Shown here in pieces: positions 5,879 to 57,405 of a stretch of DNA of 64,000 nucleotides. Numbering within the stretch: the first letter of the stretch is position 1; each line of letters opens with the position of its first letter. The stretch lies in the sequence record NC_049383.1. One strand, given 5' to 3'. A model generated the notes under the pieces. That model made no database searches. It had not been told where the DNA came from and worked only from the letters and a program-made list of their open reading frames with translations. The position numbers and the translations under genes are program-made.

Positions 5879-6655
5879 TTATTTATCTTTTGAGACTAAA
5901 ACAATTTTATGTTCCATATCACTCATAAGATAAACTCTTATTGATAACACATCTTTAATCTTTTTATATTCTTTAACAGCATTAATTAAATATTCCAAAT
6001 GTTTCTTATCAGGTTTTTGTCTATACTGTTCTTTAATTTTTTCAACAAAGAAATAGATATTGGTATAGTTAGCATAATTATCCTTTGACTGATACCACAT
6101 TATTTTAGAAAAATCACTATAATCATCATCTAATAAAAGTATAGCGTGACCCATTTCATGAGCTAAAACATAAGCTCTACCAGTTGAGTCAAAATATGTC
6201 GCATCTGAAAGAACTATTTCATCAGGGAATAATTCACCATCTATAACATCAAATGTTGTATAAGCTATTGGATAAACTTTATCACCATTTTTATTAATTG
6301 AATATCCCATATTATGAGATTCCTTAACATAGAATAAAATATTATCGTAACGTTCTTGATATTTATCATTCCAAAAACCATTATCAATTCCTATCTGTCT
6401 CCAAATTTCAGCATCCTTTTCGACTTCGGGTGAATCATATTTCATATTGAAATTTCTAGTCTGCATTTCATTTACTGTTTCGATTGTGAAATTTTTACCG
6501 TTATACCAACCAGTATTATAACTAATTCGGAACACTATAACCACCACCAACATGAAAGTTAGTGGTGAGAAAATTAGTCTAAAATCTTCAACACTTCTTA
6601 GTTTGTTTAACACACCTTCTATAACATTTGTACTCTTTTTTGTAAATTTCTTCAT
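5879..6655 (-). CDS. membrane-anchored zincin-like metallopeptidase
   Basis: N-terminal hydrophobic helix LIFSPLTFMLVVVIVF; HEMGH (HExxH) motif followed by a SKIM Met-turn-like segment. Confidence 0.65.
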   Translation of the reverse strand: MKKFTKKSTNVIEGVLNKLRSVEDFRLIFSPLTFMLVVVIVFRISYNTGWYNGKNFTIETVNEMQTRNFNMKYDSPEVEKDAEIWRQIGIDNGFWNDKYQERYDNILFYVKESHNMGYSINKNGDKVYPIAYTTFDVIDGELFPDEIVLSDATYFDSTGRAYVLAHEMGHAILLLDDDYSDFSKIMWYQSKDNYANYTNIYFFVEKIKEQYRQKPDKKHLEYLINAVKEYKKIKDVLSIRVYLMSDMEHKIVLVSKDK

Positions 6656-16976: not shown

Positions 16977-17459
16977 TTATTCACAACAATCTACACATAC
17001 CGAATCATCACCATCCTCTGCTTGTTCTGATATTTCACACCACCAACCACATTCAGCACAATTGAAAATTTCATTATCAATTTTACCCAATTCATCAATG
17101 TTTAATTCAAAACAGTCTATATGTTGAGTTTCACAAGCTTCATCCAAACTCTTACAAGTGCCTTGTAACTCATCAACTAATGTTGTTAAACAAAGATATG
17201 GTTTCCATGTTTCAACATTTTCTGATGGTAAATTATCACCAGTTCCCTCAACACCATGCTCAACAGAATCATCATTTATGTTAGGTATTAATTTGAAAAC
17301 ATCTTCTGTGATGTTATATGTTGCATAGTGCTTATTACCATCTTTAGTTTTAATTTCTACTATGGATGAGTAAACATTGTCTTTTCCTGAAAATAATTCA
17401 AAGTTTGATTCCTCTATAGGATATTCACCATTTTGGTCAAATTTACGCTCTTTAATCAT
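16977..17459 (-). CDS. hypothetical protein with C-terminal Cys-rich zinc ribbon (160 aa)
   Basis: FNCAECGWWC...VCVDCCE at the C-terminus. Confidence 0.75.
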   Translation of the reverse strand: MIKERKFDQNGEYPIEESNFELFSGKDNVYSSIVEIKTKDGNKHYATYNITEDVFKLIPNINDDSVEHGVEGTGDNLPSENVETWKPYLCLTTLVDELQGTCKSLDEACETQHIDCFELNIDELGKIDNEIFNCAECGWWCEISEQAEDGDDSVCVDCCE

Positions 17460-17479
17460 ATCTATATGTTTTTATGTTG

Positions 17480-17509
17480 CAAATATAAAACAATTATTTG
17501 ATTTTACAA
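17480..17509 (-). promoter_or_regulatory. Bacteroidota sigma-A type promoter
   Basis: Minus strand TTG (17507-17509), 19-nt spacer, TATATTTG (17480-17487); 20 nt upstream of ATG 17459. Confidence 0.75.
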
Positions 17510-17558
17510 GTTTTTAATTACAATTTCTATAAGAATTTTTTAAACCTCTCTCCGCGCT

Positions 17559-17712
17559 TTTATTTATGTTATTTGTATTTATAATATATAAAAGAAAATG
17601 CACCTAGGTACATTTTTACTGATTTTCTTTAAATAAAAAATTCGTTTTATTGAGAATATGATAAAGAAATTGTTAAAATATTGTCGCTACAGCAAGGTTT
17701 GTATATGTCGTA
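17559..17712. repeat. dispersed intergenic repeat, copy 1 (154 bp)
   Basis: Gapless match to 56984-57137 with 18 mismatches by manual alignment (2 in the first 72 bp); contains TATTTATA and the near-palindrome aaaatgcacctaggtacatttt. Confidence 0.95.
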
Positions 17713-18028
17713 AATTTTTCGGGTGTAAATGTTTAAAATTAAACAAATTTTAGAAATTTGTTAAATTCTTATAAAACGTTGTAAATCATTTACTTAAAAG
17801 TGTAATTGAAAATGTTAAAAAATTGGTCATGTTAAATATTTTACGTATGTGATTTTTAACAATTTTAACAAAATTTTAACATTTTATTTTTGTGCTAAAA
17901 TAAAAAGTGTCGAAAAATAAAAATCCGTTTTAAGGGATTAAAAATAATATTATATACTAAATATATAAAAATATATTAAAGTGTCTTAAAACGGCTAAAA
18001 TAGCTTTAAATTTTATTATATGGTAAAA

Positions 18029-18052
18029 TAAAAGCCTCGTAAAACGAGGCTT
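18029..18052 (-). terminator. intrinsic terminator
   Basis: aagcctcgt-aaa-acgaggctt with a U-tract on the minus strand, downstream of 18075..18464. Confidence 0.75.
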
Positions 18053-18074
18053 AAACAAATTATTATGAAGCAAA

Positions 18075-18464
18075 TTAGATATGTTTATTTTTTTCCTTAA
18101 AAAGTTTATAAACATTATCTAAATATTCTATAGTTAACTTTTCTTTCTTAACCAATCTATTGGCTACGAATAAAGCCATGATTCTAGTTGAGTAAGTAAA
18201 AATACTTGAATCCATCATTCTAAGTTTACAATAAATTGCTATAACTTCTTCTAAAGGAGTCCAATAGTAAATTCTTACTTGATGATAAGGTAACTTTAAA
18301 AAGTCTATAATATCACTATACCAATCAAATTTCTTGTATAGTGGTCTTTGCGCTTGGTATAATCCGAATACCAAAATAGCTATGAAAGCTAATTTACCTA
18401 AAATTACATACATTGTGTATGGTAGGTAATCTAATATATTGTTAATTAAGTTAATTATTTCCAT
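18075..18464 (-). CDS. hypothetical protein with N-terminal hydrophobic helix (129 aa)
   Basis: MYVILGKLAFIAILVFGLY segment. Confidence 0.7.
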   Translation of the reverse strand: MEIINLINNILDYLPYTMYVILGKLAFIAILVFGLYQAQRPLYKKFDWYSDIIDFLKLPYHQVRIYYWTPLEEVIAIYCKLRMMDSSIFTYSTRIMALFVANRLVKKEKLTIEYLDNVYKLFKEKNKHI

Positions 18465-38771: not shown

Positions 38772-41700
38772 TTATAGTATGTTTGTAAATCTTGTATCAT
38801 TATTTACAATCTCTCTACCATCAGCATAATTTGCATTAACAGCGTTGTGCATTATCTTACCGTTATTTACTAAAGCTTTAACAGTATATGCATCAGCAGT
38901 AGCATCAGGTGAAGCCTGTAAAAGATAAGTTGCTGTATTAACCATTAAGAACTTATTAGTTCCCCTAAATTCAATTACAGGGTTTGTTCTAGTAATTGGA
39001 TAATTATTAACACTATCAGCATCAACGATAATTGCATTTGTCGCATTCGCACTTTCAAAATCAACATTCTCAATAATTAATCTTAATGGGTCATACAAAG
39101 TTCCTGAATAATCACGTTGACCAAATCTAGTTCTTGCAACTCTAGCATTAACACTATCATTTTTATAAACTAAATCTTTTAAGTGTACAAAAGACTTATC
39201 GAAATCACCAGTTGTTCCCCTAGTTTGGTCTTGACAATCAAACAAATAACGTGTATTGTTTGTAGATTCTATATAACCAGTAGCAGTAAAATGCAATCTA
39301 AAGAAACTGTTTGTATGTAATAAAATACCCGCGTTTATATGGTCTATAGTACCATGCATTTTAAAGTTAAAAATACCACTTTGTAAACCATTAAAAACTC
39401 TAAAATCGTGGAAATTAGTACCACCTTTTATATCACCCAATTCAATATTAAATGTACCACCATACTTTACAGAATAATCACCATTTGTCATTGCAATAGG
39501 GCTTAAACCACAGTTATTAAATAAAACAACATATCCACCAGTAACACCAGTTACGTCAACTTCACCGATATTGAAATTATAAGTTCCGATTTGACCCTCT
39601 CTAGGAGCGTGCTGAATCATGTATAAAGACGATGATGTTGTTTGTGTACAAATTAATTTCCCAATAGTTAAATTAATTTCATCAAAACCAAATCCTGACA
39701 TTATACCTTGACCGCCTAAATCTCTATTAATTTCATATTCTGCAACATTTACATTAACAATATTTATCTTGCTATCATCACCACTTGTTGCCATTGTGAT
39801 AGGATTATTATTACCCGCACCACCTGTAACATTTCTAACCTTCTTAGCTATAATATCTATACTATCATACATTTTTAAACTCTTAGGTGATAAAACCTCA
39901 ATAATACCATCATTTATTAATATTTTACTATCATAAAGATTTGTATTTGTTTCAATTCTTAATGTTACAGGACTACTAGATTGAATTGTTATACCTCTAT
40001 AGTTATAAGACTCATCATTATTAATTGTAAACGTGTTATTATTACCAACTAATATAATTTTGAAATCAGAATAATCATACTTAGTTGTATTCGTTCTAAT
40101 CTCATCTAAAACATCATTAATATCATTGAAGTATTTATTAATGTTACCAAAAGCAGGTGTATGTGTAATCGCGCCCGATTTTACGATAGCAAAATTACCA
40201 TCATTAGGAACATTTTCTAAATATTCAACAGTAACTAAATGTTTATCTTCTGTTATTTCCGAAACACTAGCATTAGACTTAAAAACACCATCAGAATAAA
40301 CTTCTGTAACAATATTATCACCTAAAACAACTTGATTTGATTTAGTTGGTTGTGCATTATGACCGATTGCCGTTGAATTTTGGAACGAATATAATAAACT
40401 AAATGTATGTGTACCCGAACCTATACTATTAATCGTATTATCAACAAACTCAAATGTATTTGCATCAATAATCTCAATTCTTATTGGAACAGATGGTGAT
40501 AAACCACTTATAGAAGTACCACCACTACTAACAGAATATTGAATCAAAGTAACAGAGCCATTAGCACCGAAACCATGTGAATTTATAGTTATTCTATCAT
40601 TAGCAATATCAATATCTGTATTATTATCAGCAATACTTTTATCATTATATGTTATGATATCATTAAATGCATCTTGACCAAGTGCTGTATTAGAATCACC
40701 TACGGCATATTTTAATGAATTTCTACCTATAGCAGTATTGTTATTACCTGTTGACCTTTCACCTGCATTAGAACCTATTGCAATACCATATTCGTTTGAT
40801 GAGTAAGCACCTGAACTATAACCAATACTTATAGATTGTTGACCCTTATTAGAGTAACCCGCATTATTACCAATACCAATCAAATAATTCGCATCAGCAC
40901 TAAATATTGAAGCTGAACCGATACCAATACCTGCATAAGAGTTAGCATCACGACCAGCATGATAACCAACTAATGTTGCACTTTGACCTGTGTTATTTCT
41001 ACCTGCTTGATATCCGATACCAATAGTATATGCAACAGTATTATAATATATTGATTGGAAACCAATACCTATAGAACCTGTACCTGTATTATTCCCACCT
41101 GATTGATAACCAATACCTATAGCATTTTGACCCGAATTGGAAAATAGTGATTGATGTCCTATACCAATAGAGTTACTACCTGTATTACTTTGAGCTGATG
41201 AACCACCAATCGCAACAACATTATCAGCAGAATTTGCATAAAGTGCTGAACTACCAATACCTATAGAATTGTGACCAGTATTATTAACACCTGATGAACC
41301 ACCAATTGCAACAGCATAATTACCTGTGTTATTTTGTAACGCATAATCACCAATACCAGTACCACCTAAACCTTTACTTCCACTCAATGCTTCAAGTCCT
41401 AAACCAACTCCCGAAGTACTACCCCAAGAAGAACCATTCCAGTATTCTGATTGGAAACGCAACCTAATTTCATTATTTTTAACTCTTAAAGGTGCGTAGT
41501 GTCTAGCAAAATTCGTTCTTTCAGTAATATTATTTGATAATAAATATCTATCACCTAAATTAACATCATTTATAGCACCAGTATAAGGTACTGCATCATT
41601 AGATGTGACAAATCCTTGGTCATTCTCAAAACTAGATAATGAATCAATTTGTTTCCAAGTTAAAACCTCAACTTCATCACCATTATCTAACTTATATTTA

Positions 41701-44700
41701 ACTAAACTATCATCAGAAGTGTTTTCTACTTTGATTGTTTGTAACGTCATTGGTTCACTTGTGTAACCAACAAAGTTAGTTGTAGTAGTATTTGATGTTA
41801 TTAAACTTCCACTACTTGAAACAGTATGTAAACTTTCGAATAATGTATAATTATAAGTAGAACCATAACCAGTATTAGGTATAACTAAACTATTGCTGTC
41901 AATTTTCCAAGTTCTCCAATCAGGTAATGTAACACCTACATTAGTTTCAAAGAACTCATATAATCTCTTAAACCAAACTTTAGGGTCTTCGGTATTTGAA
42001 TAAATTTCACCTGTTTCTGTACCGTATGTAAAATCTGTTGCGCTAGAACCACCATGTAAGAAATAATCTGTACCATTATAAACAAATCCAGTAACTGCAT
42101 AATTTGATGATTTATTCATGTTAGTTGTAATAACATTAGTATCACCCATATCATAATGAACACCTGTAGATTCACCTATTAAAGCATTAGTATCTTTAAC
42201 ACTAGTTGATGGTAACATATCATTTTCAGATAATGTAGCTGAATTTGTAATGTTACCAAACCTTTTGGTGGTAAATGTTATATTTTCATATAAATCATCT
42301 ATATATGATGTTACATTTGTTGAAAAACTTGAAGGTGTGAAAGTTAATCTTTCGACAACAACTTGTGAATATGCATCTAGTGCGTCTGTTGTTGTGTTTA
42401 TATTTATACACAAATATGTTAAACCATTCCATGTTGATAATGTACCATTAAATTGACCTATTTCAAGTATGTAATTTGTATTACTACTTGTTAATAAAAT
42501 AGCATTAGCATCACTTACTGTAACAGATGGTGTACTTTCATTCATCGAAACAGCGAACTTAGTACTGAATTTAACAGGGTGATTTCCAGTTTGGTTACTA
42601 AATACACTAAAATCAACCTCAAATTTTCCACCAGTTGTTAATGTTAATGGAATTAAAATCATAGGCGAATTGTTCGAGGCAACTGACGTATCTTGAAAAA
42701 CACTATTTTTTGGAATCATACTAAATTTATTAGTTAATGGCTTCCAAATATTTTTACCACCGTTTGCTAAAACAAATTCTCTCGTTGCTAAATGTTTATC
42801 ATCAGTTATTTCAGCTATCTCAACATTAGATTTGAATAATCCCTCAGAATAAACCTCTTCTGTAAAATCACCACCCAAAACAACTTGATTTGACTTTGTT
42901 GGTTTCGAACGGAAACCAAGTGCAACAGAATTAGTTATTTTTAATTGAGGTATCAATGTTAAATCACCAGTACCTGCATCGTTCATAACATGATTTTTAA
43001 ACTCTAAAGTATTAGCATCTATGATTTCCATTGGGAAAACTGTAGTTGAGTTTAAACCACTTGGGAATGTTCCCGCAGTAGTAAACTTAACCAAAATTGT
43101 TTTACCTGTAGAACCTAAACCATGTGATGTAACTGTTAACCTTTCATTTGCATGGTCGATATTAGCATTCGAAATAACTTTATGGTTTGTTGTATCTTCG
43201 GTAAATTCATACCAAGCCTCGTGACCGATAAATGTATTACTTGAACCCTCAACATATCGTCCACTTCTATAACCTATACCAATATTATTATCACCGACAT
43301 TCTTTTCCAAAGATTGTTCACCCATACCTATCGTATTATCACCCAAGTTAGTAGCACCTGCGGTATAACCGATAAATATAGCTCTATCACCTGTATTATT
43401 TTGACCTGTATATGAACCTATACCAACAAATCTAAGACCTGTATTATTTTGTCCTGAATAATCACCTATAAATGTTGAGTTAGAACCACTATTACTAAAA
43501 CCTGCACTTTCACCAATACCTATAGAATTACTTGCGGTGTTATCATGTAAAGCCCTAGAACCTAAAGCGATTACAAAATTAGAGTTATTATTCATACCTG
43601 CTCTATAACCGAATCCTAAAACAGTAGTACCAGTATTTCCTTTTAATGCATCATGTCCTATACCGTTTACATAATTTCCAGTATTAGATTGCCCTGATTG
43701 ATATCCAACAAATACGCTACTTGTACCCGTGTTATTTGCACCCGCAGAACCACCGATAGCAACTAAATAACCACCAGTATTATTAGTACCTGCATTAACA
43801 CCCATACCAGTAGCTCTTAAACCAGTATTATTTCTTAATACATTATGTCCGAATCCTGAAACTTCTATACCTGAATTACTTTCTAAAGCCCAGTTACCAA
43901 AACCTGCAACATTAGAACCTGTATTATTCTTTAGTGCTTGATACCCATATGCATTTGAATCACCACCTGTGTTATTCATTGCAGATTCTATACCGTAAGC
44001 ACTAACCCTAGCACCTTTATTATTTAAAAGTGTATTCTGTCCTATACCATACGCCAACGCATTAACCCAAGATGAACCACCCCAGTATTTGTTTTGTACT
44101 CTAAAAGGAACTACATCATTAACCGTGAAAGGTTCGAAATGTATTGCTGTATCATTTATAAAGTTTGAATTATTTGAATTTAGAATATTTTCACCTAAAT
44201 CTAAATTTTGATTTGAACCATGTGATTTGTTGAATAAATCTGTTAATTGTAATTCATTCTCAACACTAACTTCTAAACCATCATCAAGCTTATATGTAAT
44301 ACTATTATCTTTTTTATTTAAAATTTTAGTTACTAAACCTCTTATTCTTTCTGTCTCGAATATGTTATTAGAACCATCAGTACCAATACTTTCAACCAAT
44401 GAATTTGCTGTATTTTTTGTTGATATCTTGGTTAATAATGACATATCAGCAGTAACACCAAAACCACTAGAAGGAATTTTTAATGTATTTCCGTCAACTT
44501 TCCAATATCTCCAATCAGGTAACTTTAAACCTGTTTTGGTTTCAAATACTTCATAGAACTTAGCAAACCAATATTCTGTATCATCTGTATTTGGATATAA
44601 TTCACCAACATGAGTATCATATCTAAATGTTGTTACTGTTCCACTTGGTAAAACGTGGGTTACACCATTATATTCAAAAGAAACTAAAGCATTACCTAAT

Positions 44701-47700
44701 GACTTATAAATATTAAAGTCTCTAGTATCAATATTTTCTAAACTTTGATAATATCCATCTGTTAAAATCTTTGTTTCAACAGTATCATTACTATTTGATT
44801 CTAAATACTCAATAGTAACTAAATGTTTAGGGTCTGATATTTCATTAACATCAGCTTCTGATTTAAAAACACCATATGAATATACTTCATCAACATTTGC
44901 ATCACCTAACATTACTTGATTAGATTTCGTTGCGTAAGAATTAGCACCTAAAGATGTTGTGTTTGTAAATTCTTTTAATGTTTCGAATTGATGTGTTGAA
45001 CCACTAGTACCTGCACTAGATAGTGTAAATGTTACTGGTCTTAAAGTATTAGCATCAATAACCTCAAATTGTGATATTGTACCACTAGATGAGTGAGGAA
45101 TACCAATATTATCAGAGCCAACAATTCTCTTATATCTCAAATAAACAATCCTAGATATAGAACCTAGACCGTGACCAGTTATTGTAATTAAATTATTACT
45201 TACATCAAAATCATTAGTGTTGTTTGTCGTAAATGTGTTTTCTGTAATAAAATCAGACATTGAACCATACCCAATTGCTGTATTTGTGTCTGAACCTTCA
45301 TTTAAGTATGTCAATGTATGAGAACCAATAGCAACATTATTATTAGATAAAGACCACCATGATGAGCTATGACCAATACCAATATTGTTTGAACCTGTAG
45401 CTCTGTTTAAAACACTATGACCGATACCAATACTCTGTGTTGCAGAACCACCATTATCAGACATTACATTATAACCTAAAGCAACATTGAAATTCCCTTG
45501 GTTACCATATAAAGACCTATAACCTAAACCAGTATTACTACTACCTGTATTACCTCTACCACTTTCATGACCTATGAAAGTAGAATTAACACCACTATTT
45601 GTATAACCTGCTCTATAACCAACCGCAACTAATCTACTACCTGAGTTACTAAATCCTGCCGAAGCACCATATGCTACTGTTTGAACACCTGAGTTAGAAG
45701 AACCTGCACTATGACCAACAAATGTACTTTGATTTCCAGTATTTGCATTACCCGCATTAGTACCTATTCCGATACTACTGTCACCATTATTGTTAGACAT
45801 TGCATAATTACCGATAGCAATAACAGAATCACCACTATTTGAGTGTGCTGAATTTTCACCAATCCCGATACCACTAGGCGCGCTAGTATTAATTAAAGCA
45901 TTATTACCCAATCCGATACCATTAGTTGTAGCCCAATCTGAACCATTCCAATATTCTCTTTGGAATCTCAAATAGTTTGGCGCACCATTATATAAGAATG
46001 GTACAAAATATTTAGATTTGGTAGAAACCTCTTCAATATAACCCAATTCAAGTTCTTGTGTTCCTAAATTAAGTTTTTGTGTTGCCCCAGTATATGGAAC
46101 ACCTTTATCTTCAAAATATTCTTTAGAAATCAAATGTTTATCTTCTGTTATTTCTGTAACATCAGCATTTGACTTGAATACACCTTGTGAATATACTTCA
46201 TTAATATTCTCATCACCCAACATTATTTGATTGGATTTTGTGAAATTAGAGTTTGCGCCTAAAGCTGTTGAATTTTCTATAACAAATTGAGCAGTTAATG
46301 TGTGAGTACCAGTATTATCACCTGTAGATGTTATACCATTAGCATTTAAAAACTCAATAGTATTTGCATCAATAATTTCAAATGTATTTGCTTCTGAATC
46401 ATTATTAAAATAAACAGTTAAACCACCGATAGCAGTTCCACCACCACTTAAATTATATTTTAAATTCACAATATCACCAACATTACCAAAACCATGTGAT
46501 GTAATTGTAATTCTATTCGTAGCAACATCAACATCTGTGGTTACATCATTTATTTGTTTTTCAGTTGATGCGTCTGTATTGAAATCACCAACCGAATTGT
46601 AACCAATAGCTGTGTTATTATTGAATGTGTTATATCTAAGTGTATTAGCACCTATACCTAAAGTATTAGCACCTTTATTATCTTTTAATGATTTGAAACC
46701 TATACCAATCGAATATTCACCAGTATTCCTATGCGCAGTCCAGTAACCAATACCAATACTATGTAAACCAGTATTTGAATAACCTGTTGTGTCACCTATA
46801 AAAACACCACCATTTGCAGTATTATCATGACCTGCTTGATACCCAAGTAATGTTGCACCAACCCCTGAGTTATTAACACCAGTTGCATACCCTGATATTA
46901 AAGATTGTGAACCTGTATTGTTTTGACCTGCCGCATAACCAATACCAACGACTCTATGACCCGTGTTATTAAATAAAACACCATTACCAATACCTACAGT
47001 ATCATCCCCTTGATTTTGACCACCCGCATTTATACCAATACCTAAAAATCTATAACCTTTATTGGCATTACCTGAACCACTACCAATTAAAAATGACTCA
47101 GAAGGATGCCAAGCACCAATCACAAACCTTTCTTTTTGTGTTTTAATTATATCAGTTCCATTAGAAAGTATAACTTTATTAAACCTAGCTGTGTTTAATA
47201 CTTCAACTTCTTTACCCGCATCCAAATAGTTATCACCTAATACAACATTATCTTTAGCACCTGTATATGGTACAGCATCACCTTCTTGTAAATACTCAAT
47301 ATCTTGCTCTAAGTGTGATAATTTAGTTATCAAACTCCACTCTGTAGGAGTTGGCTCTATTTTATAATCACCTTTAAAGAACTCCCTTGTAATTGTACCA
47401 TTATTATCCTCAACTTTCATCAAGGCTATTAAATTAGTTTCAATAGATTCGTATGTTGATACATTATCATCTTGGAATGACGGAATTGATTGTTGAACAC
47501 CATCATATATATTCACACTACCCATTAATGAAAAATCAACAGTAGAACCGTAACCACCTTTAGGCATTATAATTATAGTATTATTAGATTGGTCGTTAGA
47601 CCATGTTTCCCAATGAGGTAGTCTAACACCTGTTTTTAATAAGAAAATGTCATAGAATCCCTTAAATATGTCTTTTGCATCAATGCTTGTACCGTATTGA

Positions 47701-48461
47701 ACTTCACCAGTATTCTCCCCAATAGTAACATCAAATAAACTAGAACCATCATGTGTTATATATTGTGTACCATCATAAGTAAAACCAACGATAGCACCAT
47801 CTGAAATAGCACTAGGTACTGATAGTTTAAAAACATCTAAATTTAAAGCTATTACTTTATAATCTTCTAAAACAACAGTTTCCTCGTATTTGTCAATAAA
47901 TGTAAATGTTTGCTCTTCTGCAACACTAACACCACCATCAGCATCGATAACTAAACGTCTATTTGCATTACCTTCACCAAATTCAGAATCTAATTTTTTA
48001 TCAATATCACTTTTCAAATCAGAAGCAGTACCTTCATAAGTACCTTTATCCAATTTATTACCAATTTCATTGATATTATTGATTTGCTCTGCTGTTAAAT
48101 TAACATCATTTGAAATTACGTTCCAATCTGAACCATCATATAATTTAAGGCTTTTATCACTTAAATCATACCATAATGACCCAATTGCTAAATTCGTTGT
48201 CGGTGCTGTGTTTGAATAGTACACAACACTTGATGAATTTGAATCATCTTGCGCATCCTCAATATCCTGTAAATCGGCTATTTTAGTAAGAGTACCCATG
48301 ATGTTAAGGTAAATACCATCATTAACTACATATCCGAATAAAGCGTCTTCATTAAGCTCTTGTGTAGCCTCTTCAACGCTTCCGAATCTTTGTAATTTTT
48401 GACCAATAATAGTACCTTTTTTCTGTAGGTTTATGTCTTGACCTGTTTTAATTTGTTTCAT
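38772..48461 (-). CDS. giant modular tail fibre / adhesin (3229 aa)
   Basis: Four arrays of 14-residue GxxAGxxNTGxxxxxIG repeats (YadA/Hia head-like), each followed by ITSHG and TKSNQxxLGD...KHL segments; unique N- and C-terminal domains. Confidence 0.85.
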   Translation of the reverse strand: MKQIKTGQDINLQKKGTIIGQKLQRFGSVEEATQELNEDALFGYVVNDGIYLNIMGTLTKIADLQDIEDAQDDSNSSSVVYYSNTAPTTNLAIGSLWYDLSDKSLKLYDGSDWNVISNDVNLTAEQINNINEIGNKLDKGTYEGTASDLKSDIDKKLDSEFGEGNANRRLVIDADGGVSVAEEQTFTFIDKYEETVVLEDYKVIALNLDVFKLSVPSAISDGAIVGFTYDGTQYITHDGSSLFDVTIGENTGEVQYGTSIDAKDIFKGFYDIFLLKTGVRLPHWETWSNDQSNNTIIIMPKGGYGSTVDFSLMGSVNIYDGVQQSIPSFQDDNVSTYESIETNLIALMKVEDNNGTITREFFKGDYKIEPTPTEWSLITKLSHLEQDIEYLQEGDAVPYTGAKDNVVLGDNYLDAGKEVEVLNTARFNKVILSNGTDIIKTQKERFVIGAWHPSESFLIGSGSGNANKGYRFLGIGINAGGQNQGDDTVGIGNGVLFNNTGHRVVGIGYAAGQNNTGSQSLISGYATGVNNSGVGATLLGYQAGHDNTANGGVFIGDTTGYSNTGLHSIGIGYWTAHRNTGEYSIGIGFKSLKDNKGANTLGIGANTLRYNTFNNNTAIGYNSVGDFNTDASTEKQINDVTTDVDVATNRITITSHGFGNVGDIVNLKYNLSGGGTAIGGLTVYFNNDSEANTFEIIDANTIEFLNANGITSTGDNTGTHTLTAQFVIENSTALGANSNFTKSNQIMLGDENINEVYSQGVFKSNADVTEITEDKHLISKEYFEDKGVPYTGATQKLNLGTQELELGYIEEVSTKSKYFVPFLYNGAPNYLRFQREYWNGSDWATTNGIGLGNNALINTSAPSGIGIGENSAHSNSGDSVIAIGNYAMSNNNGDSSIGIGTNAGNANTGNQSTFVGHSAGSSNSGVQTVAYGASAGFSNSGSRLVAVGYRAGYTNSGVNSTFIGHESGRGNTGSSNTGLGYRSLYGNQGNFNVALGYNVMSDNGGSATQSIGIGHSVLNRATGSNNIGIGHSSSWWSLSNNNVAIGSHTLTYLNEGSDTNTAIGYGSMSDFITENTFTTNNTNDFDVSNNLITITGHGLGSISRIVYLRYKRIVGSDNIGIPHSSSGTISQFEVIDANTLRPVTFTLSSAGTSGSTHQFETLKEFTNTTSLGANSYATKSNQVMLGDANVDEVYSYGVFKSEADVNEISDPKHLVTIEYLESNSNDTVETKILTDGYYQSLENIDTRDFNIYKSLGNALVSFEYNGVTHVLPSGTVTTFRYDTHVGELYPNTDDTEYWFAKFYEVFETKTGLKLPDWRYWKVDGNTLKIPSSGFGVTADMSLLTKISTKNTANSLVESIGTDGSNNIFETERIRGLVTKILNKKDNSITYKLDDGLEVSVENELQLTDLFNKSHGSNQNLDLGENILNSNNSNFINDTAIHFEPFTVNDVVPFRVQNKYWGGSSWVNALAYGIGQNTLLNNKGARVSAYGIESAMNNTGGDSNAYGYQALKNNTGSNVAGFGNWALESNSGIEVSGFGHNVLRNNTGLRATGMGVNAGTNNTGGYLVAIGGSAGANNTGTSSVFVGYQSGQSNTGNYVNGIGHDALKGNTGTTVLGFGYRAGMNNNSNFVIALGSRALHDNTASNSIGIGESAGFSNSGSNSTFIGDYSGQNNTGLRFVGIGSYTGQNNTGDRAIFIGYTAGATNLGDNTIGMGEQSLEKNVGDNNIGIGYRSGRYVEGSSNTFIGHEAWYEFTEDTTNHKVISNANIDHANERLTVTSHGLGSTGKTILVKFTTAGTFPSGLNSTTVFPMEIIDANTLEFKNHVMNDAGTGDLTLIPQLKITNSVALGFRSKPTKSNQVVLGGDFTEEVYSEGLFKSNVEIAEITDDKHLATREFVLANGGKNIWKPLTNKFSMIPKNSVFQDTSVASNNSPMILIPLTLTTGGKFEVDFSVFSNQTGNHPVKFSTKFAVSMNESTPSVTVSDANAILLTSSNTNYILEIGQFNGTLSTWNGLTYLCININTTTDALDAYSQVVVERLTFTPSSFSTNVTSYIDDLYENITFTTKRFGNITNSATLSENDMLPSTSVKDTNALIGESTGVHYDMGDTNVITTNMNKSSNYAVTGFVYNGTDYFLHGGSSATDFTYGTETGEIYSNTEDPKVWFKRLYEFFETNVGVTLPDWRTWKIDSNSLVIPNTGYGSTYNYTLFESLHTVSSSGSLITSNTTTTNFVGYTSEPMTLQTIKVENTSDDSLVKYKLDNGDEVEVLTWKQIDSLSSFENDQGFVTSNDAVPYTGAINDVNLGDRYLLSNNITERTNFARHYAPLRVKNNEIRLRFQSEYWNGSSWGSTSGVGLGLEALSGSKGLGGTGIGDYALQNNTGNYAVAIGGSSGVNNTGHNSIGIGSSALYANSADNVVAIGGSSAQSNTGSNSIGIGHQSLFSNSGQNAIGIGYQSGGNNTGTGSIGIGFQSIYYNTVAYTIGIGYQAGRNNTGQSATLVGYHAGRDANSYAGIGIGSASIFSADANYLIGIGNNAGYSNKGQQSISIGYSSGAYSSNEYGIAIGSNAGERSTGNNNTAIGRNSLKYAVGDSNTALGQDAFNDIITYNDKSIADNNTDIDIANDRITINSHGFGANGSVTLIQYSVSSGGTSISGLSPSVPIRIEIIDANTFEFVDNTINSIGSGTHTFSLLYSFQNSTAIGHNAQPTKSNQVVLGDNIVTEVYSDGVFKSNASVSEITEDKHLVTVEYLENVPNDGNFAIVKSGAITHTPAFGNINKYFNDINDVLDEIRTNTTKYDYSDFKIILVGNNNTFTINNDESYNYRGITIQSSSPVTLRIETNTNLYDSKILINDGIIEVLSPKSLKMYDSIDIIAKKVRNVTGGAGNNNPITMATSGDDSKINIVNVNVAEYEINRDLGGQGIMSGFGFDEINLTIGKLICTQTTSSSLYMIQHAPREGQIGTYNFNIGEVDVTGVTGGYVVLFNNCGLSPIAMTNGDYSVKYGGTFNIELGDIKGGTNFHDFRVFNGLQSGIFNFKMHGTIDHINAGILLHTNSFFRLHFTATGYIESTNNTRYLFDCQDQTRGTTGDFDKSFVHLKDLVYKNDSVNARVARTRFGQRDYSGTLYDPLRLIIENVDFESANATNAIIVDADSVNNYPITRTNPVIEFRGTNKFLMVNTATYLLQASPDATADAYTVKALVNNGKIMHNAVNANYADGREIVNNDTRFTNIL

Positions 48462-52357: not shown

Positions 52358-52378
52358 TTAACTATTTATTATTTAAAG

Positions 52379-52417
52379 TGTTAAATAAATGTTAAATAAA
52401 TGTTAAATAAATGTTAA
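52379..52417. repeat. 11-bp tandem repeat (tgttaaataaa x3 plus tgttaa)
   Basis: TGTTAA at 52379, 52390, 52401 and 52412. Confidence 0.9.
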
Positions 52418-52424
52418 AGTTAAA

Positions 52425-52442
52425 AAGCCCCTTTCGGGGCTT
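52425..52442 (-). terminator. intrinsic terminator
   Basis: aagcccc-GAAA-ggggctt plus U-tract on the minus strand, after the stop of 52446..54182. Confidence 0.85.
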
Positions 52443-56885: not shown

Positions 56886-56983
56886 TGTGTTTTTTTTGTT
56901 TTAATTAATATAACAATTGAAATCAAATTTTATCCTAATTTTATGTATTTTCAAATGTTAATTTATCTATGAAAAATATTAAG

Positions 56984-57137
56984 TTTATTTATGTTATTTG
57001 TATTTATAATATATAAAGGAAAATGCACCTAGGTACATTTTCACTGATTTTCTTTCAACGAAAAATGCGTTTTACTGAGAATCTTCCAAAGAATTTGTTA
57101 AAATATTGTCACTACAATAAAGTTTGCATATGTTGTA
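56984..57137. repeat. dispersed intergenic repeat, copy 2 (154 bp)
   Basis: Gapless ~88% match to 17559-17712, same orientation, also ~100 bp upstream of a minus-strand start codon. Confidence 0.95.
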
Positions 57138-57367
57138 TCGTTTACCAGTATAAACCACGAAAAAAATTACACTAAGTTTACGTTCCCTTAACATTAAATT
57201 TACATTAAACGACTTAAACATTTAATAATCAAATAATTATGAAAATTGTTAAAAATGTTAAAATTTTTCACTTATTAACATTAACTTAACATTCGCTAGA
57301 ATTTCGCTATTTTCTTAACATTAAATTAACATTGGAAAATGGTCGTTTTTGGGTCATTTTTTATATA

Positions 57368-57405
57368 AAAAGTGGCTTTACGAATTAAATCAGAAAGCCA
57401 CTTTT
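57368..57405. terminator. intrinsic terminator
   Basis: aaaagtggcttt-14-nt loop-aaagccactttt downstream of 57429..61865. Confidence 0.7.

Follow-up and report, generated by a model that had tools for sequence, protein, structure and literature searches.

A seven-copy intergenic module of Tenacibaculum phage pT24, a possible composite cis-regulatory element

In phage T4, the replication origins oriF and oriG combine a middle promoter with a downstream unwinding element while oriE carries iterons, and in baculoviruses the homologous regions (hrs) act as enhancers and putative origins. Here we describe a non-coding cassette of Tenacibaculum phage pT24 (NC_049383.1, 234,670 bp), a T4-related jumbo myovirus with a G+C content of 28.85%, two copies of which lie in the 64,000-nucleotide (nt) stretch that was analysed (genome positions 62001-126000, hereafter the window; positions refer to the window unless assigned to the genome). 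T4-type phages contain PeSL and PmSL elements, small composite terminator-promoter motifs that mark indel points between relatives, PmSL being a described variant on a non-early promoter class (PMC2839356, PMC4122927). Campylobacter group II phages such as CP21 and CP220 carry long bipartite repeat arrays built from at most 18 units of 72-86 bp, which separate genome modules and sometimes enclose genes (PMC4546147). The jumbo-phage group of pT24 has no RNA polymerase of its own and encodes sigma factors together with an orthologue of the T4 late co-activator gp33 (PMC7824862). For jumbo phages of Bacteroidota, the control of transcription and replication is essentially uncharted, and intergenic repeats go unmentioned in the genome announcement of pT24.

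A preliminary description of the window had pointed to its two largest intergenic gaps as holding paralogous, co-oriented, non-coding sequences of the same architecture, and all of this holds: both are the biggest gaps free of open reading frames (ORFs) in the window, and they align without gaps between 17559-17729 and 56984-57154 at 85% identity. The conserved 154-nt block has the reported 18 mismatches, 12 of them transitions, and its 136 matches on the best diagonal far exceed those of 200 shuffled sequences (mean 74, maximum 81). The hairpin AAAAUGUAC-CUAG-GUGCAUUUU, the U-run and the octamer TATAAATA were likewise found in both copies (Table 1). The observation is therefore confirmed, yet incomplete, since the family has not two members but seven. 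Blastn and profile searches of the pT24 genome returned exactly seven copies, at genome positions 19.1 k, 60.3 k, 79.5 k (copy 1 of the window), 118.9 k (copy 2), 139 k, 182 k and 211.5 k, and the whole-genome profile search detected no additional degenerate ones.

Every copy occupies one of the largest intergenic gaps of the genome, where it is preceded by the upstream gene's terminator and followed by the promoter that belongs to the downstream gene itself. Four copies lie in the left, minus-strand half and three in the right, plus-strand half; because the two groups are mutually inverted, all seven are co-oriented with the next gene (two-sided p of about 0.016 by our own calculation). Six of the downstream promoters follow the Bacteroidota consensus TTG-N19/20-TAnnTTTG and the remaining one, that of gp144, has GTTATATTA instead. 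The genes that follow belong mostly to replication, repair and nucleotide metabolism and include the SSB-like gp110 and a helicase (after copy 1, as had been proposed), DNA polymerase, a clamp-loader operon, DHFR, RNA ligase and a 1310-residue metallophosphoesterase, in addition to a gp2-like end protector. Two copies occupy divergent junctions. Genes flanking different copies show no paralogy to one another, and joint duplication of cassette and gene was accordingly discarded as an explanation.

Along the direction of transcription, each cassette consists of a 200-250 nt field of TGTTAA boxes, a core of ~100 nt, a 22-nt near-palindrome centred on CCTAGG and a T-run, followed by an AT-rich stretch with TATAAATA and a second octamer, CATAAATA; the island GCGCGCGGAGAGAGG comes next in subfamily A alone, and a variable stretch of 50-250 nt leads to the downstream promoter. 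Subfamily A comprises four copies, copy 1 among them, with about 90% identity across 400-450 nt, while subfamily B comprises copy 2 and one other, 95% identical across 393 nt. The 19 k copy has only the core and about 30 nt upstream in common with subfamily A. The (A)GCGCGCGGAGAGAGG island, G+C-rich in a 29% G+C genome, is missing from subfamily B and the 19 k copy. The TATATAA-like motif that had been noted near 17950 and 57362 is not part of this arrangement: it is non-homologous between the two copies, lies outside the conserved units and amounts to ordinary AT-rich sequence.

The most telling result is that conservation between the subfamilies climbs steeply along the unit: identity is 57-61% in the box field, reaches 75-79% across the 5' portion of the core and peaks at 95-100% over a 63-nt segment that starts with the hairpin, before dropping to about 50%. 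The most constrained portion is thus promoter-sized and mostly 3' of the hairpin. Within it, a nearly invariant 51-nt block begins in the 3' arm of the hairpin and extends 35 nt beyond the hairpin, or 40 nt beyond the centre of the palindrome. Since most of this block lies downstream of the supposed RNA terminator, it does not fit an RNA ending at the U-run; judged by its extent and position, it fits a promoter-sized DNA element.

The octamer TATAAATA, a perfect match to the T4-type late promoter, is invariant in all seven copies and recurs 16-84 nt upstream of 18 other pT24 genes, including the large terminase gene and gp137. In upstream regions outside the cassettes its orientation bias is 12:5, a suggestive figure though not a strong one. 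No 8-mer is more enriched in front of pT24 genes than TATATTTG, whose orientation bias is 28:5, so that the phage clearly uses host-type promoters; the corresponding host -7 element, TAnnTTTG, has no conserved position inside the cassette on either strand. A separate motif, (T)TGTTATATTA(A), was observed ahead of about 10 genes, at a distance of 27-79 nt and with an orientation bias of 7:0; some of these are virion genes. Its sites include window positions 56899-56920, genome positions 75899, 138745, 148369 and 159769, and three loci of relatives (L015:9954-9980, L018:9960-9975 and L025:9590-9610); relatives retain it ahead of the gp2 homologue, in divergent junctions it is palindromic, and we consider it a candidate for a second phage-specific promoter or operator class.

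The TGTTAA boxes, already noted in the preliminary description, set the cassettes apart from the remainder of the genome: six cassettes coincide with the six densest 250-nt windows for this hexamer, with 6-8 boxes each against a mean of 0.58 (standard deviation 0.85) over the 234.7-kb genome, and the 19 k copy has three. The boxes follow the consensus WWTGTTAAAAT, occur in both orientations and are grouped in triplets or pairs 9-12 bp apart, with three boxes at 9-12 bp in subfamily A and pairs at 11 bp in subfamily B. The cassette therefore contains what is expected of an iteron origin, namely at least three helically spaced direct repeats by AT-rich DNA, and A-tracts phased at 10-12 bp are present in all seven copies. 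The pairing typical of T4 oriF and oriG, in which a middle promoter with a host -10-type element accompanies an unwinding element, was not found; the DNA is AT-rich, though at the base composition of this genome (29% G+C) that is no distinguishing feature. Although little more than random similarity is left between the box fields of subfamilies A and B, both keep arrays of the same box, which argues for selection on the boxes themselves. The only array outside the cassettes consists of four tandem TTTAACATTTA units with an 11-bp period and no core, located on the minus strand (52370-52440) between a G+C-rich terminator and the ATAAATA / TATATTTG promoter of the 32-residue gp141. Its place directly upstream of a promoter links the boxes to promoter control. 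TTAACA was also considered as a -35-like element and rejected, as no -10 or -7 element accompanies it consistently, whatever the spacing, and single TTAACA sites upstream of other pT24 genes showed no pattern.

We then compared the cassette-bearing junctions with those of metagenomic relatives, represented by two long contigs (232 kb, JAHDBD010000006.1, and 202 kb) and a number of shorter ones; the proteins on either side of the junctions share 42-73% identity with their pT24 counterparts. The cassette is missing at all three syntenic junctions, which hold a terminator and a promoter only, and the flanking genes are conserved. Between gp145 and gp2, the relatives have 77-78 nt, consisting of a terminator and then a GTTATATTA-type motif, against 543 nt in pT24; between gp112 and the next gene, before the SSB-like gene, they have 48-153 nt, with a terminator and then TTG...TATATTTG, against 615 nt; and the divergent junction between the baseplate gene and the DNA polymerase operon spans 3-92 nt against 643 nt. 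The module is thus an addition, and sits exactly between a terminator and a promoter that function without it elsewhere. The core was not detected by nhmmer in about 150 kb from four relatives, and no comparable dispersed repeat family was seen in the 63 kb (27%) of the closest relative, the 232-kb contig, that were screened.

The search was extended to larger collections. BLASTN, which had been suggested as a check on conservation, bore out recurrence within the genome by recovering the seven pT24 copies but not recurrence in other phages, with no further match among 50,697 phage records. In IMG/VR, three exact or degenerate signatures matched only the seven sites of pT24 itself; two signatures found nothing in GTDB genomes, and one signature gave two chance matches in JGI metagenomes (in contexts of 41% and 35% G+C, nhmmer scores 9-11). 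Such signature scans need exact patterns and would miss strongly diverged homologues. In Tenacibaculum phage PTm1, the search for an analogous family covered a 1.2-kb gap, which does not belong to a multi-copy family.

The cassettes are non-coding. In agreement with the earlier statement that no ORF is conserved, a six-frame scan and counts of codon positions and substitutions all speak against coding. The longest shared frame (plus strand, MHLGTF...) is interrupted by TGA or TAA stops in four of the seven copies and has a synonymous to non-synonymous ratio of 8:41, variable sites are spread evenly across codon positions, and another candidate frame is disrupted by a frameshift between the two B copies. 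A suppressor-like tRNA of pT24 cannot rescue these frames, since it reads TAG rather than TGA or TAA. This tRNA, with anticodon CUA, is encoded outside the window at genome positions 191520-191594 (called 'Pyl' by ARAGORN and tRNA-Sup in the record, and of the amber-suppressor type) and is adjoined by two tRNA-Ile(UAU) genes; the 289 called ORFs end in TAG 35 times, in TAA 245 times and in TGA 9 times.

From its sequence, the cassette looks more like a protein-binding or promoter control element than a structured RNA gene. Our preferred reading, to which we assign a probability of roughly 40%, is that it may be a composite cis-regulatory DNA module of the pT24 lineage, made up of phased protein-binding boxes, a stem-loop and a phage-specific promoter; its copying into seven terminator-promoter junctions, mostly before replication, repair and nucleotide-metabolism operons, is put forward just as tentatively. 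The copy number, orientation and position of the cassettes, their absence from relatives, their non-coding nature, the box arrays and the conservation gradient are shown directly, and each step of the mechanism is inferred. In such a module, the phased WWTGTTAAAAT field would bind a sequence-specific protein or bend the DNA for one, and the stem-loop with its T-run may insulate the module from upstream transcription, a step we propose with particular reserve because the stem is weak and variable. The 51-nt block would then serve as a phage-specific promoter with the T4-type late octamer TATAAATA as its key element, read by the host RNA polymerase with a phage sigma factor and a gp33-type co-activator. 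The class of this predicted promoter is probably late and sigma/gp33-dependent; genes that already have a host-type early promoter would gain from it a second wave of transcription, under phage control. Genes like those downstream of the cassettes carry several promoter classes in T4.

Several points weigh against this reading. Outside the cassettes TATAAATA is modestly enriched, and GTTATATTA, with an orientation bias of 7:0, competes with it for the part of late promoter. An 8-bp sequence suffices for a T4 late promoter, a requirement that 51 invariant nucleotides exceed, and the promoter model gives no role to the 100-nt 5' part of the core. The relatives, in turn, express the same genes without the cassette, which makes it dispensable for the basic programme. 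Finally, the identity among copies could come in part from recent copying or gene conversion rather than from selection.

The preliminary description had proposed, as one of two models, a pair of related non-coding RNAs (ncRNAs) of ~340 nt with a conserved 3' domain. Extended to the whole family, this would mean seven small ncRNA genes, each with a phage-specific promoter inside its box field and with the hairpin and U-run as its terminator; the products would act by sequence (as antisense RNA, sponge or decoy) and not by way of a conserved fold. All copies point in the direction of transcription and stand free between a terminator and the next promoter, as such genes might, and the hairpin and U-run are kept throughout, the hairpin being significant against shuffles in three of the four copies folded. 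Its U.G pairs are compatible with a minus-strand RNA only, as is a 4-bp small hairpin with U.G pairs and one double change from G-C to A-U. The G.U argument for the strand put forward earlier is nevertheless weak: the pair in question is U.G in six copies and C-G in the seventh. Folding, Rfam, covariation and promoter tests all failed to support the model. The claim that no known RNA family is present stands, as an Rfam scan of the whole window gave no match at the gathering score and a permissive scan of 17400-18150 yielded chance-level matches only (E 0.03-9, well short of gathering), all of them outside the core; CRISPR-repeat models matched 17908-17945 (E 1.2 and 9.2), outside the conserved unit, and were set aside as chance, and no tRNA or tmRNA was found. 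The fold is no better than that of shuffled sequences (z of -0.56 on the minus strand and +0.91 on the plus strand). Covariation, put forward earlier as a check, was of no useful support across the seven copies: RNAalifold gave -14.2 kcal/mol with an unfavourable covariation term of +0.88 and compensatory changes at 1 of 49 pairs, a comparison whose power is limited by the 7 copies and 25 variable columns. Hairpin energies in four copies are -8.1, -12.0, -13.5 and -1.6 kcal/mol, the last in the 139 k copy, where an A.C mismatch at the adjacent pair nearly destroys the stem. The 3' arm is invariant and the 5' arm varies at three positions, a pattern not expected under selection for the stem, and the terminator scan that called the gp112 terminator did not call this A+U-rich stem, which is followed by a U-run. 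There is also no conserved host-type promoter (TAnnTTTG) upstream of the block on either strand, and the model leaves unexplained why the best-conserved 51 nt lie mostly downstream of the proposed 3' end. We regard a family of ncRNA genes as unlikely.

The second of the earlier models, transcription-primed origins, extends to seven copies as a set of origins or enhancers in which a phage initiator binds the TGTTAA iterons and the AT-rich core or the palindrome melts, giving up to seven start sites that might double as transcriptional enhancers in the manner of baculovirus hrs. The iteron-like boxes, 9-12 bp apart in both orientations and retained even where box regions are 57-61% identical, the phased A-tracts and a 22-bp palindrome adjoining very AT-rich DNA all suit such a role, and so do the neighbouring genes (the SSB-like gene and helicase, DNA polymerase and the clamp-loader operon), the two copies in divergent junctions, where upstream insulation is unneeded, and the precedent of T4, which uses several origins, oriE with iterons among them. 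Against this, none of the copies has a linked initiator gene, the neighbouring proteins are mutually unrelated, origins do not require strict co-orientation with transcription, the relatives replicate without the cassette at the three sites checked, and the same boxes precede an ordinary promoter at gp141. The GC-skew inflection that had been proposed as a test did not fall at a cassette: the cumulative minimum lies at the switch in gene orientation (genome position 123807), and because skew is confounded by the coding strand and follows gene orientation it is uninformative as an origin marker. Taken together, origin activity appears about as unlikely as a set of ncRNA genes, and its most specific form, in which the cassettes would be the 'homologous regions' of a tailed phage, recently gained by one lineage, with iterons bound by a dedicated phage protein and serving as early origins and as enhancers or insulators, seems rather improbable. 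A selfish or neutral dispersed repeat, either a non-autonomous mobile element or a product of recombination at terminator/promoter junctions whose conservation reflects spread and gene conversion, would account for the presence of the cassette in pT24 and its absence from the three syntenic junctions of relatives, for the lack of signature matches beyond pT24 and chance in IMG/VR, GTDB genomes and JGI metagenomes, and for the mosaic pattern of sequence patches common to the copies. Copy 2 is in addition bracketed by a 19-nt inverted repeat (56947-65 and 57322-40, 95% complementary). This sole inverted repeat contains a TGTTAA box and is missing from the 211 k sister copy, and no terminal inverted repeats or target duplications are common to the copies; no target-site duplication was found at the junctions compared with the empty sites of relatives, no transposase is linked to any copy, and all seven share one orientation. 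The steep, ordered gradient and the box arrays kept in diverged subfamilies point to selection, and we hold a selfish or neutral repeat to be very doubtful.

Table 1 Features of the two cassette copies in the window and of their surroundings
Feature	Position	Strand	Remarks
Copy 1, full subfamily-A unit, about 446 nt	17508..17953	(-)	89-91% identical to the 60.3 k, 139 k and 182 k copies (blastn, alignment)
gp112 intrinsic terminator, G+C-rich stem	18032..18052	(-)	-13.2 kcal/mol; upstream of the cassette, outside it
Copy 1, three direct TGTTAA boxes, distal end	17856..17881	(-)	9-11 bp spacing
Copy 1, four opposite-orientation boxes	17671..17835	(-)	TTAACA on the minus strand; box 17671-17676 within the core, invariant in 7/7 copies
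Copy 1, core, 170 nt	17559..17728	(-)	common to all seven copies; nhmmer E 1e-46 to 1e-51
Copy 1, 22-nt near-palindrome/hairpin AAAATGTACCTAGGTGCATTTT, then CTTTTATATATT	17595..17616	(-)	-8.1 kcal/mol as RNA
Copy 1, 51-nt nearly invariant block ACCTAGGTGCATTTTCYTTTATATATTATAAATACAAATAAMATAAATAAA	17559..17609	(-)	2 variable positions in 7 copies
Copy 1, T4-type late-promoter octamer TATAAATA	17576..17583	(-)	sequence match
Copy 1, second octamer CATAAATA	17561-17568	(-)	
Copy 1, G+C-rich island GCGCGGAGAGAGG	17545..17557	(-)	directly 3' of the invariant block; subfamily A only, 4 copies
gp111 host-type (Bacteroidota sigma-A) promoter	17480..17509	(-)	TTG, 19 nt, TATATTTG; outside the cassette
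Copy 2, full subfamily-B unit, 393 nt	56979..57371	(-)	95% identical to the copy at genome 211.3-211.7 k
Copy 2, core, 170 nt	56984..57153	(-)	profile search
Copy 2, 51-nt nearly invariant block	56984..57034	(-)	TATAAATA at 57001-57008
Copy 2, hairpin/palindrome	57020..57041	(-)	-12.0 kcal/mol as RNA
Copy 2, box field	57188..57331	(-)	five TGTTAA (two pairs, 11-bp spacing) and two TTAACA (57247, 57256)
Copy 2, further TTAACA boxes	57096 and 56956		57096 within the core
gp145 terminator hairpin	57371..57403	(-)	outside the cassette
GTTATATTA motif, promoter-like element of gp144 (T4 gp2-like DNA end protector)	56906..56914	(-)	kept in relatives, there right after the terminator
Four tandem TTTAACATTTA units (gp141 array)	52379..52417	(-)	11-bp period; without core

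The surroundings of the cassettes and the genomes of the relatives gave a few further observations. Near genome position 138.8 k, upstream of the 139 k cassette, a divergent junction holds two small, nearly identical hairpins, ATTCCGCTTTTATGGAAT and ATTCCACTTTTATGGAAT, about 30 nt apart. Elsewhere in the window, a 3229-residue ORF on the minus strand (38772-48461), annotated as 'chlorovirus glyco repeat domain-containing', has many repeats with a 48-nt period and four 181-nt repeats spaced about 1.3-2.6 kb apart. The 202-kb relative (ENA contig c_000001072143; L018:1025-2212) encodes a TnpB/IS605-OrfB-type protein with a Cas12f-like TNB domain a few kb from the gp2 homologue, and the gene has no pT24 counterpart in the syntenic stretch. 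In the closest relative, the 1093-residue homologue of pT24 gp118 contains a perfect 503-nt tandem duplication (L021:5591-6093 and 6101-6603).

For a phage group of this kind, the seven-copy module offers candidate promoters or origins, a motif (WWTGTTAAAAT) with which a binding protein could be found, and, through the relatives that lack it, a natural comparison between presence and absence. Were it to define a phage-specific class of transcription, it would provide the promoter class of this phage group; origin or enhancer activity would make it an unusual case of many identical origins in one phage, and 'homologous regions' would be a bacterial-virus counterpart of the baculovirus hrs. If the repeat were selfish, it would show that non-coding DNA can spread between terminator/promoter junctions in T4-related genomes.

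Among the systems to which the cassette can be compared, the baculovirus hrs are likewise AT-rich repeats dispersed around a large double-stranded DNA virus genome, with an imperfect palindrome and protein-binding repeats, the latter predicted from sequence in pT24; they belong to a eukaryotic virus, are unrelated in sequence and form tandem arrays of about 70-bp units, so that the analogy is functional only. The same applies to the T4 origins, which also lie in intergenic regions by replication and recombination genes, join a promoter-like element to AT-rich DNA, number several per genome and, in oriE, have iteron-like repeats as the cassette does, but which share no single sequence, whereas the conserved part of the cassette lacks a MotA-type or host-type promoter. 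The arrays of CP21 and CP220 are, like the cassettes, highly similar dispersed non-coding repeats in a T4-related genome and suspected recombination targets (PMC4546147); the pT24 cassettes differ in being single, non-tandem units.

The PeSL and PmSL elements come nearest to the cassette among known kinds: both they and the cassette are multi-copy intergenic sequences of T4-related myoviruses in which a stem-loop stands beside a promoter-like element, and both differ in presence or absence between related phages. PeSLs are small and numerous, carry sigma-70-type early promoters and are concentrated in hyperplastic regions, beside variable ORFs; the units of pT24 are larger by a factor of five to ten (390-450 nt), number seven, contain no ORF and occupy conserved core junctions, so that of the features that delimit PeSLs (small size, hyperplastic location, variable flanking ORFs and presence/absence polymorphism) only the last is shared. 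They also add a 100-nt core and a TGTTAA box field, and their promoter-like part has the late-type TATAAATA in place of the host consensus. The stem-loop, the T-run and TATAAATA are kept in all seven copies, and the putative promoter is of neither the early nor the host class. By analogy, the cassette can be tentatively placed, in kind, as an enlarged, late-promoter relative of the PeSL cassettes of T4-type phages.

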